Positions 3,770 through 63,365 of a stretch of 64,000 nucleotides of DNA are shown one piece after another. Source of the stretch: Camelus dromedarius (Eukaryota). The notes beneath the pieces were generated by a model, which did no database searches, was not told where the DNA came from, and worked only from the letters and a program-made list of their open reading frames with translations. Both the position numbers and the translations under genes were made by a program. Position 1 is the stretch's first letter. Each line of letters starts with the position of its first letter. The stretch is from the NCBI RefSeq assembly GCF_036321535.1, contig NC_087449.1, positions 23,188,001-23,252,000 of the forward strand. The letters run 5' to 3'.

Positions 3770-4262
3770 AGAAAGAAGGAAATCCCACCATTTGTGACAA
3801 CATGGATGGACCTTGAGGGCACGATGCTAGGTGAAATGTCAAACAGAGCAAGACAAATACTGCCTGGTATCATTTATATGTGGAAGTTTTTAAAAGTCAC
3901 ACTCATAGAAATAGAGAGTAGAAAGATGGTTGCCGTGGGCTGGGGGTAAGGGAAGTAGGGAGAGGTTGGGAAAGGGAACCAAAGTTCAGCTATAAGATGA
4001 GTAACGCCTGAGGACCTAATGTGGAACACGGTGACGACCCCTGACCACACTGTATTGTACAAGTGAAATTTGCTAAGGGAGAATTTAACTGTTCTCACTC
4101 CCACCCCTCCCCCAACAAGACAAATACATGAGGTGACGGATGTGTTAGCTAAGGGGAAATCCTTTCACAATGATACGTGTATCAAATCACCACGATGTTC
4201 CCTTTAAATATCTCACAATTTTATATCTCAGTTATACCTCAGTAAAGCTGAAAAAAAATAAA
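3770..4262 (+). mobile_element. L1 3' fragment (L1MA/L1MB-like)
   Basis: aagaaggaaatcccaccatttgtgacaacatggatggaccttgagggc...ctcagtaaagctgaaaaaaaataaaa. Confidence 0.85.
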
Positions 4263-9287: not shown

Positions 9288-9453
9288 TTTTTTTTCTTTT
9301 CGAAGGAGTGAGGGGGTGGGGGAGGGAAAGGGTGAGGTGGTAATTTAGGTTTATTTTTAATTAATTTTTTTTAATGGAGGTACTGGGGAATTGAACCCAG
9401 GACCTCGTGCATGCTAAGCATGTGCTCTACCACTCAGCTATACCCTCCCCACT
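9288..9453 (-). mobile_element. tRNA-Ala(AGC)-derived SINE (camelid Vic-1-like)
   Basis: Head ggggagggtatagctgagtggtagagcacatgcttagcatgcacgaggtcctgggttcaattccccagtacctcca, then A-rich/aaacctaaattacc tail and polyA; TSD tgaaatgactt (9277-9287) / tgaagtgactt (9454-9464). Confidence 0.85.
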
Positions 9454-11496: not shown

Positions 11497-11626
11497 AGGG
11501 AGGGTATAGTTCACTGGTTGAGTGCGTGCTTGGCATGCATGAGGTCCTGGGTTCAATCCCCAGTACCTCCGTTAAAAAAAATTTTAAAATAGATCTAATC
11601 CCCCTCCCCACCCAAATTTTTAAAAA
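11497..11626 (+). mobile_element. tRNA-Ala-derived SINE (camelid Vic-1-like)
   Basis: gggagggtatagttcactggttgagtgcgtgcttggcatgcatgaggtcctgggttcaatccccagtacctcc plus A-rich tail; imperfect TSD gggaacacag / gggaaacacag. Confidence 0.85.
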
Positions 11627-14155: not shown

Positions 14156-14326
14156 TTGGGTTTTTTTTAGTTTCTTTTTTCTTTTTAAAAAAATTTTGTC
14201 AGGGGAATAAGGTAACTAGGTGTATTGATTTACTTATTTTTTTAATGGAAGTACTGTGGATTGAACCCAGGACCTCATGCATGCCAAGCATGCACTCTAC
14301 CACTGAGCTATACCCTCCCCTCCAAC
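14156..14326 (-). mobile_element. tRNA-Ala-derived SINE (camelid Vic-1-like) with perfect 13-bp TSD
   Basis: Same head reversed at about 14245-14320; TSD aacattcagtttt at 14143-14155 and 14327-14339; TT/AAAA L1-endonuclease site on the minus strand. Confidence 0.9.
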
Positions 14327-21570: not shown

Positions 21571-21727
21571 GGGGGAGGGTGCAGCTCAGTGGTAAAGTGC
21601 ATGCTTAGCATGCTGAAGGTCCTGGGTTCAATCAGTACCTCCTCTAAAAATAAATAAACCTAATTACCTCCCTCTGCCAAAGCAAAATAATTAAATACTA
21701 CAAAAACAAAAACAAAAACAAAAAACA
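21571..21727 (+). mobile_element. tRNA-Ala-derived SINE (camelid Vic-1-like)
   Basis: ggggagggtgcagctcagtggtaaagtgcatgcttagcatgctgaaggtcctgggttcaatc...agtacctcc, aaataaataaacctaattacctcc tail, then (caaaaa)n. Confidence 0.85.
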
Positions 21728-33012: not shown

Positions 33013-33272
33013 NNNNNNNNNNNNNNNNNNNNNNNNNNNNNNNNNNNNNNNNNNNNNNNNNNNNNNNNNNNNNNNNNNNNNNNNNNNNNNNNNNNNNNNN
33101 NNNNNNNNNNNNNNNNNNNNNNNNNNNNNNNNNNNNNNNNNNNNNNNNNNNNNNNNNNNNNNNNNNNNNNNNNNNNNNNNNNNNNNNNNNNNNNNNNNNN
33201 NNNNNNNNNNNNNNNNNNNNNNNNNNNNNNNNNNNNNNNNNNNNNNNNNNNNNNNNNNNNNNNNNNNNNNNN
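33013..33272. other. N-gap (260 N), expected to contain CACHD1 exon 15
   Basis: Run of N between exons 14 and 16; the expected exon-15 peptide (FSVRNEVM...DPTRRQW) is not encoded in either flank. Confidence 0.9.
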
Positions 33273-53418: not shown

Positions 53419-53568
53419 CATTCATGAGGGCGTAGGTGAGAATCATTACGGAGTTGTTGAGAAAGCTATTTTCTTCATTGATGACACGGAGAGTCGCCTT
53501 TTTATCTTCCTCTGAAGAGTCCTTTGATGTGATACCGGCTGACAGGTAAATTATGACCATGTCTGTAT
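53419..53568 (-). CDS. CACHD1: CACHD1 exon 8: (N)TDMVIIYLSAG...MILTYALMN(D)
   Basis: gtttag| acceptor, G|gtaggt donor, 150 nt; ORF 53411..53737. Confidence 0.96.
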
Positions 53569-55884: not shown

Positions 55885-57074
55885 TTTACTTACTAGGCTA
55901 TTCCCTCTCTAGCCGCTCATGGGGATGTTAAGCCTTGTGATTCATAATGTTAGGGATGAGTAATTATAGGGACTTGGGGGCAGAGCAAAGACATAGCATA
56001 TACCTGGAAGAAAATACAACACTCTTCATTTCACAAGTCCCCATCTAAGCCACCAGCGTACCTTGGGGTCAATTAACAAAGAGGGAAGAACAACTCAAAT
56101 TTGGGCTTCGCCCACACCGTTAGATCCCCACTCCTAACCATCTTATTCCTTCTGCTACAAAATGACCCCTCAACCAGTTGCCCCTCCAAGCAAAGCCAGA
56201 ACAAACAACCCAAATGTGCTGATGCCATCAGTTATAGATCTACCATGGGACTGAAAGAGAGTCAGCATTGGATAGAAGTTTCAGATTTTCTGATTAGTAC
56301 AAAGCAAATCAGTACAAAGCCACCACGATTTATGCCATGTGGCTTTTATTCATATGGCCACCAGCGTGGCACAGACACTTTACTTCCATGCGCAGACTAG
56401 TCCTTACAATAACCCTACAGGGTAGGTCTTACTCGTTGGAATAATCCCCCCCTCATGGCCTTTCAAACAGCACCAGGTGCACAATAGATGCTAAATAATT
56501 GCCTGTGGCGTGAACATGAGTAATGATTTATTTAGAGTCCAAGCTCCTAAGAGGAGTACACAGGCCCTTCACAACGCTGTAGCCAAAGCCACCAACGGTC
56601 CGTGGACACCTTTGGGCTTGGAGTCAACTTAGGACATCTGGGGTGTCTGCTCCCCTCTAGCCAGAGGTAGAAGTCTTGTAGGAAACTGAATATCATAATA
56701 ACTACGGTTAATGTTTATTTAATATTCATGATGGGACCCTGCACCTTGTTATCACCCCCAGTTTGCAGATGAGGAAACGAGGCCTGGAGAAATCAAATAA
56801 TTTACACAAGTTTACAAGTTTAGAAAAATTTCAGAGTAGGAATTCGAACCCACATTGATTGAAATTCAAAACCCACACACTTAACTACTATACTACATCG
56901 AGAGCACCTCAAGCCTCTCCTTAATAAACTGGGTAATGCTAATTCCTGGAGTGTTTTCTTTTATGCAATCTAATTTGGATTCTTTTTCCTCTGATCTGCT
57001 AGTAGAAGCTGTGAAGTGGAAGCTGGTGAGTTAAACTTTAAAAGCATCTCACGCGGACTAAAAATGACTGTCCC

Positions 57075-57280
57075 GAGCATTTAAAAACCCATGCCATCAA
57101 AATTTGTCCAAGCCTCTGATGGTCACTCTTCTTGCCACATTTTCGCTCACAAACATTAAGAAAACACCCAAAAGCTAGAGAAATGTTTTCCCTCAAAGCG
57201 GCCTTCTGCGAGTGTGCAGCACAGGTGGGTTTGTAAGAAGAGGTTTAATGAGGTCTCTAGTCACAGTTTTAAAGCTGGAA
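57075..57280. repeat. Bipartite duplicated element, copy 1 (intron 7)
   Basis: Direct paralog of 60934-61140; blocks 57075-57137 and 57202-57280. Confidence 0.9.
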
Positions 57281-57767
57281 GAAATGTCAACATTTGAAAA
57301 TCAAGGGATTTCACATAAAAGTTTCTGGCTTCTCTTAAATCAGAAGATCTGGCAACACTGGACAGGTATTCCTGCAAGGCAATGAGGCTGGACAGACGAT
57401 CCGCAGCCTTCCTGACAGAGCACGCGCCCTCCAGCTCACTGCACTCCCCAAACAATCCTCATGCTCGCAGGACTGCCGCTCACTGCCTGGCCGCTGCCAG
57501 TCTAACATTTCTCTCCATTACTTAAACAGTGTAATAATCAAATTTGGACTTAATCTCTAACGATGGTTTGATGACTGAAGAATCAAGCAGAGCACATCTG
57601 GTGAGGAATGCTGACAAGCAGCTGGCAGCTGGTAAATGACCAACTAGCCAATCTGTCTGGAATACTTGAGAGGTCAGCCTTATCCTTTGGTCTTACTGAA
57701 TTGTGCACAACTTTACCCTCAGCCATCCTGGAATACCGGTTTGTGGATAGCTGATGTTTGCCGAGGC

Positions 57768-58268
57768 TGGTGGGCAAAATTCTAAGATGACCCCAGTGAC
57801 CCACACACCTCGTGAGTGTGGACATGAGCAGTAATTTGCTTCTGACCATATGAATATGGCAAAGATGATGGATATCATTCCTGGGACATATACGGCAAAG
57901 ATGAAGAGATTCTGCAGATGCAGTTAAGGTCTCTAATAAGTTAATCACAACGGCGAGTAACCTACTTAAATCAAAAGGGAGAGTGAGCCCTATTAGATCA
58001 GACGTACCCTTTAAAGAGGGTCCAAGCCTTCCCCAAAGTCAGGGGCTTGAAGAAAAGATGCTATCTCTGAGTTTTACAATTGCCAAAAATGAATTCTGCC
58101 AGCCGCTGAGCTTGGAAGAGGACTCTGAACGTCAGATGAGACCACAGACCTGGCTTATACCTAGACTGCAGCCTTGTGCGATCCTGACAGGGGAGAGGCT
58201 CAGTAATACAGGACTCCTGACCCAGGGAAACTGAGATAATAATAATAAACTGTGAGATAACAACACAC
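57768..58268 (+). mobile_element. MaLR solo LTR (MLT1D/E-like)
   Basis: tggtgggcaaaattctaagatgacccc start; tgcagatgcagttaaggtc, gaattctgcca...gagcttggaagagg, ctcctgacccagggaaactgagataat. Confidence 0.75.
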
Positions 58269-59082
58269 AGAACCATCAAACTGATTCGCCCTCCACCATC
58301 ATTAGTTGTAATAATTACAGCAGCTTCCATCTTTCAAGGGCCCACCATGTGCCAGGCACTGAGCTGTGTACTTCTCAATGTTGTCTTAGTTTTAATGCAG
58401 ACACACTAATGAGCCTGAAAATATATGCTTTAAATTTATCTCAATAGGATACATTCATTAAAAAAAACAAAACCTGCAGACAGATTTTCGAATATAAAAG
58501 AGAAAATGACATAGATTCCTTTCAGCGGTTTCAAAGCATGTGTCTTATTTCAAATTTCCTTCCCTTTACTTTAGCAGGCATCCTAATTCCAGATCTTCTT
58601 TAATACATGAAAATTAAATTAGGGTGCCTTTGTGCATTTGAAGGGCTGTGCTCATCTACACGACAGCTGGTTAGGAGGAAGAAGGATCAAGGCAAGAATT
58701 CCGGCTGCCCATTTCTGCACAGATGCGTACAAGCAGACATCCCCTCAAAGTCACTGAGGAGGCAAGGCTAACAATTAGCATTAAAAAGGATGTGGGCATT
58801 CCCCTAGGAAATAAATGGGAGTATGTTCTTAATAAAGGGCAGGAAGAAGAGGCTCTGTGAGTGAGGAAATCATGCAGATGGAGTACCTTTGATTGGAAAA
58901 GATGAGATCAAATCTGGTAAGATCCTAGTATGAGATGACCATTATGACAGCACAAGAACATTTCATCCCGTCAATTTAGAAAAAAATACCTCTAGACATA
59001 GTTGTGTGATCAATTCACAGTATTATTTCTATTGCCATCCTTTATCTATTAGTTTATGAGTCCTCTGAGCAAATGCACTTAC

Positions 59083-59299
59083 TTGCTTGGAACTTGGTGT
59101 TATTGTTTGTGCTTCGAATCAGCTGGAATGCCTTTTGGAACCCCACCGCGTGCTGGGTAGGGCTGTCCAAAGACTTGACGCTGCTAACGAAGGTGGACAT
59201 TTTCCTTTTGGTCTCACTGGTGGCTGGAGACAGGAAGGTCTTATAGCACTGGTCCAGCGAGCAGGTCCTGACGGTGTCTGCCACAGTCAGCACAGAGAT
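59083..59299 (-). CDS. CACHD1: CACHD1 exon 7: ISVLTVADTVRTCSLDQC...NNNTKFQA(N)
   Basis: ctccag| acceptor, A|gtaagt donor, 217 nt; ORF 59054..59317. Confidence 0.96.
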
Positions 59300-60161
59300 C
59301 TGGAGGGGGGAAAACAAAAAAAACTTGTTATCCTGCCAGGGAAAGGCTTTTTTACGTTTTGGAAGAGCCCAAGGAGTGAGAAGTTCTACACAACAGTTTT
59401 GGAGAGTTTAAAAACAAATGCCTGGAGGCATAAATCTATTAAATTTGAAGATGATTAGGTAAGGACTGGTAAAGGATAGGGACTCCAGAGTTTGGTTTTT
59501 GTTCCAAAATGAAGTCAGCAGTATGGTGTTCATCTAAACATTAAAAACAGTATTTCACACAGAGAAAAATTTTGGCAAGTACTAACCGTTTTGATTTTCC
59601 AACTGGAAGTGAGGGTAAAGGCATAGGGTGTATGTTTTAAGCAACTAGATTAGTGAGTAAAAAAACCTTAGGAGCTGGAAAAGTCAAAATGATGCAGCAG
59701 AAAATGTCTAAGGGCAACAGATCATTGCTAGCTGTAAACACACCTATCTCTGAGGTGTCCTGGAGATTGGTAAACCTCTAGCAGCCTTCTTGTCTCCTTT
59801 CCTTCCATCAATTTTGAGATAAAGTCCAGCCATCCACCAATGTCCAAGCCTTCGCCCTGTTCCTCCTTAATATAATTTCCACTGTGAAAGTCACAGCTAA
59901 TTAGAAGTCTTAACAGGAGCCACAAAGGAAATGCAAGACTCAATTTGGTGGGGGTGGTTTTAAGAAGAGATTTGGAACCAGTGTTGGCAGCTGTTTCCTC
60001 AAACACTAGAATAAAAACTAAACCACTCTCTTTTCTCAAAGTCATTCTTAAGGATGGACTTAAAGATATGTATCATAAAACAGAAAGTACTTTAAAAAAG
60101 GTATTCAGGAAAGACTCAAAGCCATGGGGCAGGGGGCGGGGGCCACTGGGATCATGGTCAC

Positions 60162-60306
60162 CTTATCATGTTCGTCGATGGCGCTGAGGATGACCTGGGC
60201 AGCGTCCTTGGCGATCTGAAGCTGGGTGTCTGTGACGGAAGCCCCGTGGTCCAGGATCACTACTATATGCTTTGACTGTGGCCGGACGGTAGAGACGTAG
60301 ATAGGC
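60162..60306 (-). CDS. CACHD1: CACHD1 exon 6: (R)PIYVSTVRPQSKHIVVILDHGASVTDTQLQIAKDAAQVILSAIDEHDK, start of VWA
   Basis: ttctag| acceptor, AAG|gtgacc donor, 145 nt; within ORF 60105..60479. Confidence 0.96.
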
Positions 60307-60933
60307 CTAGAAGAGGAGAAGCTCTCTGGGGTCAGTCCTGGTTTAGGTTGAAGCCTCAACCTGACACAGCTATGAGTACAGAGGGGCAGGCACGTTGGTC
60401 TCCACACGTTTCTCTGGGGATGGCACAGGATGGAGAGACCAACGCAGAAGGAGACACTATCCTGGTGCACAGAAAACACCTCAAGACAACCATATGTTTC
60501 TGCAGAACAGGGATTGGTAACTTAGGTTTTCCAAAGACAAAAACAACTGGGAGAAGGTTTTAAGAAGCCAACACTTTGCAAGGCTGGCTTTTTCAGCACA
60601 CGTGAAAGTCCAGCCTCTCAGCTGCAGGGGGTGATGCTGTTCACCATTACCCCACATTCTGCCGTAGGAAATGGAGCCGGTGGCCCCACGGGCGGCAGAG
60701 AAAGCACAGCAGGGAGAGGAAAAGTGCACTTGCCGGTGCTGGGTCCGCTTCTGCAGACTTAGAGAGAAGCTTGGCTAAAACCAAGGCAGCCTGTAATCTG
60801 TGAGCATGCTGAGCAGCTCTGAATAGCAAGTTTGGTTTCTCTCTCCACAGACAAAGGCCATTGCTACGAGGGCCTTTTTCCTTTCTGTTCTGAAGCAATT
60901 TACACAGGTCAGCCACCAAAAGGCCCCTTATCT

Positions 60934-61140
60934 GAGCATTTAAAACCATGCCATCAAATTTGTCCAAGCCTGTGATAGTCACTCTTCTTGCCAAGTTTTT
61001 GTTTGCCAACATTCAGAAAAGGGGGTGGGGTGGATGGGAGAACTCCAAAGGGGAAATGCCACCTTCTGCTAGTGTGCAGCACGGGCAGATTTGTGAGAAG
61101 AGGTTTAATGAGGTCTCTATTCACAGTTTTAAAGCTGGAA
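60934..61140. repeat. Bipartite duplicated element, copy 2 (intron 5)
   Basis: Direct paralog of 57075-57280; blocks 60934-60993 and 61062-61140. Confidence 0.9.
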
Positions 61141-61493
61141 CAAATTAGAGGGAGCTTAAGAGAGCAAATCAGCCTCGAGAGAATTCTCTCCTTTATTGAC
61201 ACCCCTAAAACACTCGATTTTTCTGTGAAATCTTAGATGCCAGTTGAGTCACAAAAGCCTGGGCACAAATTGAGAAATACAGGCAAGGTACCAAAAAACT
61301 CAAAATCGGGCCAAGTTTACACTAATTGTTCTCAAGCCAAAAGTCCTACATCAATACTAAAGTACTACTATATTTTCACCAGTCAATACCATTCAGCTAA
61401 GTAGGGAAATAAATGGGAGAAAAAGAATCTGGGAGAGGTGGCTACAGAAACGAAAGAGGGAACAGAAAAGGAAGTCTGACTACCCCAACACTG

Positions 61494-61703
61494 ACAACCA
61501 TGTCATAAAGGCAGGTGAGTAGATTTTTTTTTCCCAGTGACATACCTCCTTCTTTCCAACTCAACTCAATAAATGAAAAGCAGAATATGTGTTTACATAA
61601 ATAGTAGCATTAAATGTACAATCTGGGAGGCGCTTTTCATAGTGTGATTGCGTCCTGTCTGGTGTGCTCTGGAACCCCTCCCCACACTTCAAAGGACGTA
61701 GAG
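61494..61703 (+). repeat. 210-bp direct duplication, copy A
   Basis: 206/210 identical to 62479-62688 by manual alignment. Confidence 0.95.
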
Positions 61704-62478: not shown

Positions 62479-62688
62479 ACAACCATGTCATAAAGGTAGG
62501 TGAGTAGATTTTTTTTTCCCAGTGACATACCTCCTTCTTTCCAACTCAACTCAATAAATGAAAAGCAGAATATGTGTCTACATAAATAGTAGCATTAAAT
62601 GTACAATCTGGGAGGTGCTTTTCATAGTGTGATTGGGTCCTGTCTGGTGTGCTCTGGAACCCCTCCCCACACTTCAAAGGACGTAGAG
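62479..62688 (+). repeat. 210-bp direct duplication, copy B
   Basis: 206/210 identical to 61494-61703. Confidence 0.95.
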
Positions 62689-63222: not shown

Positions 63223-63349
63223 CTANNNNNNNNNNNNNNNNNNNNNNNNNNNNNNNNNNNNNNNNNNNNNNNNNNNNNNNNNNNNNNNNNNNNNNNNNNN
63301 NNNNNNNNNNNNNNNNNNNNNNNNNNNNNNNNNNNNNNNNNNNNNNNNN
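63223..63349 (-). CDS. CACHD1: CACHD1 exon 5 (mostly hidden in N-gap; extent predicted)
   Basis: Visible minus-strand ...TAG|GTATGT donor at 63223/63222 gives phase 2, matching the G|CCT ATC start of exon 6 (S-R-P-I). Length 127 nt is taken from the recalled human exon and is not observed. Confidence 0.7.
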
Positions 63350-63365
63350 NNNNNNNNNNNNNNNN
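63226..63365. other. N-gap (140 N) covering most of CACHD1 exon 5
   Basis: Run of N starting 3 nt inside the exon, next to a visible AG|GTATGT donor. Confidence 0.9.

Follow-up and report, generated by a model that had tools for sequence, protein, structure and literature searches.

Two introns of CACHD1 share a conserved non-coding element, probably duplicated locally, with a ~50-nt constrained core

Two introns of CACHD1 each carry one copy of a non-coding element of ~230–260 nt. The copies are paralogues by duplication that predate the speciation events sampled here, and strong constraint within the element is limited to a core of ~50 nt at the right end of its block B (AGAAGAGG...GGAACAAAT). 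The pair is best read as a locally duplicated conserved non-coding element (CNE), probably with a cis-regulatory role. That this core has hardly changed in either copy, in DNA of camel-like, ruminant and porpoise origin, suggests that the two form a paired regulatory site.

Results

Two related copies flank two exons of CACHD1

We analyzed a 64-kb stretch of DNA (the window) by alignment within the window and against orthologous loci, which were found via the ORF of exon 6. The two copies (57075–57285 and 60934–61145, from block A to the end of block B) both lie on the plus strand, 3.86 kb apart. The coordinates of their parts, of the adjoining conserved DNA, of the enclosed exons and of the orthologues are given in Table 1. 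A preliminary description, from which the exon numbers are taken, had reported same-orientation paralogues ~3.9 kb apart on either side of exons 6 and 7; alignment and exon positions bear this out.

Table 1. Features of the duplicated element and its surroundings (window coordinates unless a locus is named)
Feature	Position	Strand	Remarks
Copy 1	57036..57287	+	intron 7 of the minus-strand gene; from within-window alignment and orthologues
Copy 1, possible left extension	57036-57074
Copy 1, block A	57075-57137
Copy 1, diverged middle	57138-57202
Copy 1, block B	57203-57285
Copy 1, constrained core	~57236-57285
Copy 1, orthologues	L003:13487-13710; L019:5102-5328; L009:3897-3952; L015:3395-3600		L009 match at contig end
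Conserved flank right of copy 1	57324..57373		not common to copy 2
Host exon 7	59087..59290	-	approximate ends; encodes ISVLTVADTVRTCSLDQ...NNTKFQ
Host exon 6	60180..60335	-	approximate ends; encodes ...KHIVVILDHGASVTDTQLQIAKDAAQVILSAIDEHDK
Copy 2	60886..61147	+	intron 5; from alignments within the window and orthologues
Copy 2, possible left extension	60886-60933
Copy 2, block A	60934-60993
Copy 2, diverged middle	60994-61062
Copy 2, block B	61063-61145
Copy 2, constrained core	61094-61145
Copy 2, orthologues	L003:9180-9420; L019:579-819; L020; L021; L023:590-828; L009:1-225; L022:2-96		L022 match at contig end
Copy 2, diverged collinear match	L001:9218-9460
Conserved non-coding stretch adjoining copy-2 core	61146..61363		absent from copy 1

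The product of exon 6 matched the UniRef protein "Cache domain containing 1" and gave weak VWA_N and VWA Pfam matches, below the curated cut-offs; the ORF of exon 7, used as a homologue query, retrieved short contigs only. CACHD1 is an alpha2delta-like membrane protein. The exon that follows exon 7 lies at ~53430–53565. Duplication of a unit made up of element plus exon was rejected: copy 1 lies 3.5 kb from the next exon, and copy 2 lies 0.6 kb from exon 6.

Between the copies, block A matches at 58/63 positions (2 mismatches and 3 gap positions) and block B at 72/79, with 48 of its final 50 bases identical, exactly the counts given earlier. A 24-mer and a 35-mer taken from the blocks were found solely at the two copies (0 expected in 100 shuffles), and repeat finding in the window lists the blocks as families D3 and D4. 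An nhmmer profile search (--max) of the window and ~90 kb of related loci detected no third copy. The outer flanks had been described as non-aligning. This holds on the right, where similarity ends sharply, directly after ...GGAACAAAT; on the left, weak similarity continues for ~45 nt beyond the blocks, to ~57036 in copy 1 and ~60886 in copy 2.

The duplication is old

Both copies are present in orthologous flanks in L003 and L019–L021, which are ruminant-like as judged from Bov-A2-like SINE pieces, and in L009, from finless porpoise (run SRR20997935; PMC9747978). In a further ruminant, represented by L023 and L024, the flank of copy 1 is joined to copy 2, which may be an assembly artefact or a real duplication of the two exons. 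Copy 1 also occurs in L015, from a mammal clade further removed, and L022, from a related species and 85–88% identical to L015, has the beginning of copy 2. The species types of L001, L003, L015 and L022 are assigned by inference. In L001, of sauropsid type, the copy-2 profile matches twice and collinearly (E = 2.4e-4 and 0.024), 560–800 nt upstream of exon 6 of that contig; mammalian copy 2 has the same placement and orientation. A tree of the copies resolved only the ruminant copy-1 pair.

The old duplication proposed in the preliminary description is supported by both copies in the orthologous flanks of several species, while gene conversion, its other suggestion, left no sign: copy-specific states (for example CTGATGG in copy 1 versus GTGATAG in copy 2) are kept across species, and a G-rich insert is present in copy 2 only. 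Assuming a genome size of 2.5 Gb, a family rare enough to have no other copy in 64 kb would be expected to yield at most 0.03 chance neighbours within 4 kb, which favours local duplication.

The spacer is homologous, and block A is near background

The two blocks had been taken for the conserved modules of a bipartite design, separated by an unrelated spacer. Viewed in the window alone, the spacers do seem impossible to align; with orthologues included, they prove homologous throughout. In L003 a single 242-column HSP with 71% identity spans both copies, which shows the homology of the middle. The middle of copy 2 has a 13-nt deletion specific to the window lineage in addition to the G-rich insert.

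Across species, block A is not the strongly conserved module it appeared to be. It is invariant at 52/60 positions (p = 0.05), near background, and shows decay in the first copy of both ruminants and L015. The middle and the 5′ half of block B are likewise at or near intron background. Paralogue identity inside one genome can therefore mislead: block A seems selected in the window and is near-neutral across species.

Strong constraint is limited to the core

The picture at the right end of block B is different. In the alignment of the window with L003 and L019, 51 of the 52 positions of the copy-2 core are invariant, against a background of 0.773 (p = 2.5e-5); this is higher than in the exons, where 89% of columns are invariant in the same three sequences. 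The cores of the L003 paralogues are identical at 47/50 positions, compared with 71% over the whole element (p = 5.7e-5), and L003 shares 96% identity with porpoise L009 over the copy-1 core. In cross-species alignments and profile searches, copy 1 of the window was represented only up to 57227; what is said here of the copy-1 core rests on the paralogue alignment within the window or on orthologous loci. Selection on the element, as proposed earlier, is consequently borne out for the ~50-nt core, which stands far above intron background both between paralogues and between species, and is marginal for block A.

In intron 5, constraint runs on from the core into conserved DNA that has no paralogous counterpart, up to 61363. 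In these 218 nt, 92% of columns are invariant among the window, L003 and L019, versus 77% overall and 89% in exons (p = 4e-9). Invariant runs lie across the end of the copy-2 core or beside it (61127–61176, 50 nt; 61233–61271; 61290–61318). Copy 1 has a conserved flank of its own, 92% identical to L003 with an invariant run at 57341–57366, and this flank is recognisable in the distant mammal too, since the L015 flank aligns with that of L003.

The core itself has not been kept everywhere. The copy-1 core of L015 has a 14-nt deletion, with the flank retained, and the core of L001 is ~65% alike (hand count). Because of these two observations, we regard the constraint on the core as lineage-restricted.

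No coding or RNA-structure signal in the element

A coding reading was rejected. Indels of 1, 6, 13 and 14 nt between copies and orthologues argue against it, in frames open in both copies the differences alter the amino acid, and the location is intronic, in a gene on the minus strand. A protein search with a 52-aa ORF (block A plus middle of copy 1) gave 0 matches but likewise missed the query's own ORF and so carries no information; for an ORF in the adjacent conserved patch (61237–61401), no candidate homologous proteins were found.

Paralogous structured RNAs in neighbouring introns had been offered as another explanation, and the results speak against them. The element has no Rfam match at the gathering score or at E ≤ 10, and weak Rfam matches elsewhere in 56800–61400 were rejected. 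Its fold energy does not differ from that of shuffles (z = −0.59 on the plus strand and −1.12 on the minus strand). Covariation in RNAalifold is about zero (−0.28 and +4.16 kcal/mol), with nearly all paired columns invariant. C/D and H/ACA snoRNAs were rejected, since by reading the sense strand has no correctly ordered box motifs. Intronic snoRNA or miRNA paralogues do resemble the present pair in being two related short elements of the same orientation in nearby introns of one gene; the pair differs from them in its lack of an Rfam match, of ordered boxes and of a stable or covarying structure, and in its internal indels of 13–14 nt.

Discussion

The explanation that we favour, and to which we give somewhat better than even chances, is a local duplication within CACHD1 introns whose core was kept as a cis-regulatory, protein-binding module. 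On this view, an intronic element of ~230–260 nt was duplicated inside CACHD1 before the sampled mammals diverged, its copies ending, in the same orientation, in the introns upstream and downstream of the two VWA exons. Most of the element has since drifted, copy 1 faster than copy 2, whereas genomes of cetartiodactyl type have kept the ~50-nt core of each copy almost invariant, and each core adjoins further conserved DNA specific to its own copy. Most probably, the core would be a protein-binding module of two putative intronic cis-regulatory elements, for instance enhancers or silencers, paired or redundant, that act on CACHD1 or on a neighbouring gene. The data show the duplication, its age relative to the sampled speciation events, the constraint on the core and the lack of coding or RNA-structure signal; that the element acts as DNA, and through which kind of regulation, we infer. 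The twin-enhancer idea of the preliminary description is plausible.

A rather unlikely alternative traces both copies to an ancient interspersed repeat of low copy number, of the UCON, Eulor, Eutr or MER121 type; such repeats are often exapted, and the core would be an exapted part. The copies could represent two insertions, or a non-autonomous DNA transposon could have hopped locally. The element is short, with sharp ends and non-homologous flanks, and its ends are weakly TIR-like (AGCATTTAAAAC versus the reverse complement of GTTTTAAAGCT). Moreover, old conserved repeat families are known whose origin often cannot be classified, many of them still without a class (PMC5753468). UCON, Eulor, Eutr, EUTREP and MER121-type families are similar in their general properties: they, too, are short, sharp-ended non-coding paralogues conserved to an unusual degree. 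They differ in having many dispersed copies, where here two adjacent ones were seen. Against a repeat origin, the sensitive profile found no further copy in the window or the related loci, and for a rare family two independent insertions <4 kb apart are unlikely. Neither copy has a visible target-site duplication or a poly-A or simple-repeat tail, and the TIR-like match does not amount to a TIR: it spans 11–12 nt, is largely the palindrome TTTAAA and is not retained in L015. Scanning metagenomes for a 20-base pattern from block A yielded three chance bacterial matches of only 21–24 nt, and a viral scan gave no match; both scans are uninformative about dispersed copies.

Action at the RNA level is less probable again. 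The copies would then be paired splicing-regulator sites in the CACHD1 pre-mRNA that control the two enclosed exons, for example by looping them out, or would give rise to a small ncRNA. Same-orientation copies flanking two exons fit this reading, but the same orientation is also what local duplication yields by default, and skipping both exons would remove ~362 nt (approximate ends), which is not a multiple of three. The core forms a short 15-bp hairpin on the plus strand, but only there, antisense to the host gene, because the hairpin depends on G-U pairs. By reading, the sense strand of the core contains the pyrimidine-rich motifs CCUCUUCU and UGUGAAUA, and RNA-seq contigs span 70–80% of sampled words from the intronic stretch. 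The Rfam, folding and covariation results given above weigh against this reading.

Slightly less probable still, in our estimate, is a reading in which the two cores form a functional pair bracketing the VWA exons, bridged by a common factor on DNA or pre-mRNA and controlling CACHD1 expression or exon inclusion. Such a pair would explain a core that is preserved, in both copies, even more tightly than the exons.

Least probable of all, and by our judgement very improbable, is a neutral duplication leftover whose copies stayed similar because mutation is locally slow or because of gene conversion: most of the element is at or near intron background and the copy-1 core is damaged in L015, but the copy-2 core and its adjacent 218 nt are conserved well beyond background, and conservation between species, with copy-specific states retained, is beyond the reach of gene conversion.

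To return to a locally duplicated CNE, the pair has clear parallels among CNEs, duplicated CNEs and shadow enhancers. It is non-coding and intronic, its core exceeds the neighbouring exons in conservation and lies inside a larger conserved non-coding patch, and two related copies occupy one locus. Classical duplicated CNEs sit beside paralogous genes after whole-genome duplication. The copies described here depart from that arrangement, both being in one gene, 3.9 kb apart. They also depart from CNEs in that constraint is seen in the sampled mammals only and is weak in the sauropsid-type contig (general CNE properties are covered in PMC5728398). As the evidence stands, a CNE with a local paralogue is nothing out of the ordinary, and no new class is called for.

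If the cores are regulatory, CACHD1 would be a clean natural case of a regulatory module duplicated within a gene. The shared part, at 50 nt, is small enough for the bound factor to be identified and for redundancy to be tested by deletions.

Paired element in two CACHD1 introns

Alignment within the window recovered the two copies in the same orientation with a separation of 3.86 kb, as the preliminary description had them: 58/63 positions match in block A and 72/79 in block B, and 48 of the last 50 bases (the core) are identical. The block A and block B sequences match the window at these two places alone, with 0 matches expected by chance. The host gene lies on the minus strand, which makes the element antisense in the orientation given here. 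It is reasonable to assign the gene to CACHD1, since exon 6 encodes a product matching the UniRef entry Cache domain containing 1; VWA_N and VWA Pfam matches of that entry are weak, under the Pfam cut-offs.

Positions of annotated features in the window
Feature	Position	Strand	Basis or remark
Copy 1 (intron 7)	57075-57285	+	window alignment
Copy 2 (intron 5)	60934-61145	+	window alignment
Exon 6	about 60180-60335	-	between copies
Exon 7	about 59087-59290	-	between copies
Next exon	about 53430-53565	-	host gene
tRNA-like SINE copy	9375-9447	-	Rfam tRNA match (45-52 bits across three)
tRNA-like SINE copy	11500-11571	+	Rfam tRNA match (45-52 bits across three)
tRNA-like SINE copy	14246-14317	-	Rfam tRNA match (45-52 bits across three)
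tRNA-like SINE copy	21573-21633	+	repeat-family membership
N run	33013-33272		260 nt
N run	63226-63365		140 nt

All four tRNA-like SINE copies, which may resemble a camelid SINE, fall within repeat families (82-92% alike). A 210-nt direct repeat (61494-61703 and 62479-62688, 98% identity, 985 nt apart) has the second N run nearby and is single-copy in the ruminant-like loci; either a duplication specific to this lineage or an artefact of assembly could account for it. Of the words sampled from the mostly intronic region 56900-61300, 70-80% occur in four RNA-seq runs that carry the label reproductive system metagenome, which could reflect pre-mRNA or DNA carry-over.

Local duplication or repeat family

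Searching the 64-kb window and about 90 kb of related loci with a sensitive profile gave no third copy. If a 2.5-Gb genome is assumed, a chance pair within 4 kb requires a family of ~100,000 copies, which predicts several further copies in the window. At the element itself no TSD, tail or convincing TIR was seen. Together these points favour local duplication as the origin. The alternative of an ancient repeat with few copies, comparable to the UCON, Eulor or Eutr families (PMC5753468), is possible.

Orthologous loci and age of the duplication

ORFs spanning exon 6 were found for many vertebrates in the protein collection, and their exon sequences fall into mammal-type, sauropsid-type and fish-type groups. 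Among the contigs reached through them, L003, L019-L021 and L023-L027 are 92-96% identical to one another, with introns ~79% identical to the window; they are probably ruminants, judging from two pieces that resemble a Bov-A2 SINE. L009-L014 show ~85% identity to the window, and L009 derives from run SRR20997935, in which the East Asian finless porpoise was sequenced with PacBio (PMC9747978). L015 and L022 represent two related, more distant mammals (exons 84-88% identical to the window, introns partly alignable). In L001 and L002 the exon is of the sauropsid type; L004-L008 are farther off, align to the window in exons only and mostly have a fish-type exon.

In the ruminant-like and porpoise loci, both copies are found between orthologous flanking sequences. 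L015 has copy 1, and contig L022 ends within copy 2, of which it retains the start. From this orthologous placement, the duplication predates the split of all sampled mammals. In L001, the copy-2-orthologue profile has two collinear matches (E=2.4e-4 and E=0.024). Their distance from exon 6 (560-800 nt, on the upstream side) and their orientation are those of mammalian copy 2, so copy 2 is probably older than mammals. A profile search did not find copy 1 in 3.9 kb of L001 intron 7, nor did alignment and profile search find the element in L004-L008, which are fish-type or otherwise distant.

The tree of the copies was unresolved, supporting only the grouping of ruminant copy-1 sequences, and had longer copy-1 than copy-2 branches. 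Copy-specific states are common to several species, and their retention argues against gene conversion, which had been offered as one cause of the similarity.

Porpoise contig L009 has one end inside block B of copy 2 (1-225) and the other inside block B of copy 1 (3897-3952), which is what an assembly break at the core common to both copies would produce. L023 (470-880) and L024 (runs SRR35083145 and SRR34641839) join the copy-1 right flank, in intron 7, to copy 2 and then exon 6, switching within a 33-nt stretch identical in both cores. The most likely cause is that assembly with k=31 mis-joined the contigs at the repeat; unequal recombination that truly duplicated exons 6 and 7 is possible.

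Constraint along the element

The middle, previously called an unrelated spacer, proved homologous once orthologues were aligned. Window copy 2 is without 13 nt retained by every other sequence, an insert rich in G (~14 nt) marks the copy-2 lineage, and the L003 paralogues form one 242-column HSP at 71% identity. Weak similarity reaches ~45 nt farther left; this aside, no homology extends past the element ends.

We measured constraint as the fraction of columns invariant in the window, L003 and L019 over 4.2 kb. It was 0.773 for all columns, 0.89 for the two exons, 0.87 for copy-2 block A (p=0.05), 0.81 for the copy-2 middle, 0.77 for the 5' part of block B and 0.98 for the core at 61094-61145 (51/52, p=2.5e-5). 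The adjoining non-paralogous stretch 61146-61363 reached 0.92 (p=4e-9), and the longest invariant run, 61127-61176, begins in the core and continues beyond the end of paralogy. For the copy-1 core, L003 and porpoise agree at 96% identity, and this core adjoins a conserved flank of its own, 57324-57373. Between the L003 paralogues, 47/50 core positions are identical, compared with 71% identity when the element is taken in full (p=5.7e-5). Orthologous copies and core invariance above the intron background thus uphold the proposed old duplication, partly under selection. Constraint on the core is not universal among the sampled species: L015 has an internal 14-nt deletion in its copy-1 core, with the flank retained, and the L001 core is intact in its last 14 nt only. 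The two-block design, visible in the window, is partly peculiar to this genome, because copy-1 block A is eroded in L015 as well as in ruminants, where it shows several changes besides a 6-nt deletion.

Elsewhere, L001 and L002 share with the window, at 85% identity, a 53-nt piece of intron 6 (59406-59458) that lies about 115-170 nt upstream of exon 7. L015 and L022 match it too, and L008 does so weakly; a splicing element of the intron with deep conservation is one possible explanation.

Proposed role

The best-supported description is that a conserved non-coding element underwent local duplication and that the 50-nt core common to both copies is a putative binding module. Because each core sits within a larger intronic conserved patch, we infer that the copies are most likely a pair of cis-regulatory elements. 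The main functional rival would have them act in the RNA, as paired sites in the introns for a splicing regulator; its positive support is limited to orientation and sequence motifs. Paralogous structured RNAs, the other original candidate, were not supported: Rfam gave no family on the element at gathering score or E<=10, fold stability did not exceed shuffles on either strand (z = -0.59 and -1.12), and RNAalifold found almost no covariation. A 15-bp core hairpin forms on the antisense strand only, and its bases are all invariant. Indels with lengths not multiples of three exclude a coding reading.

The observation is thus confirmed, and the element is an old one on which selection acts in part. 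Its class is a familiar one, and its regulatory function is putative.
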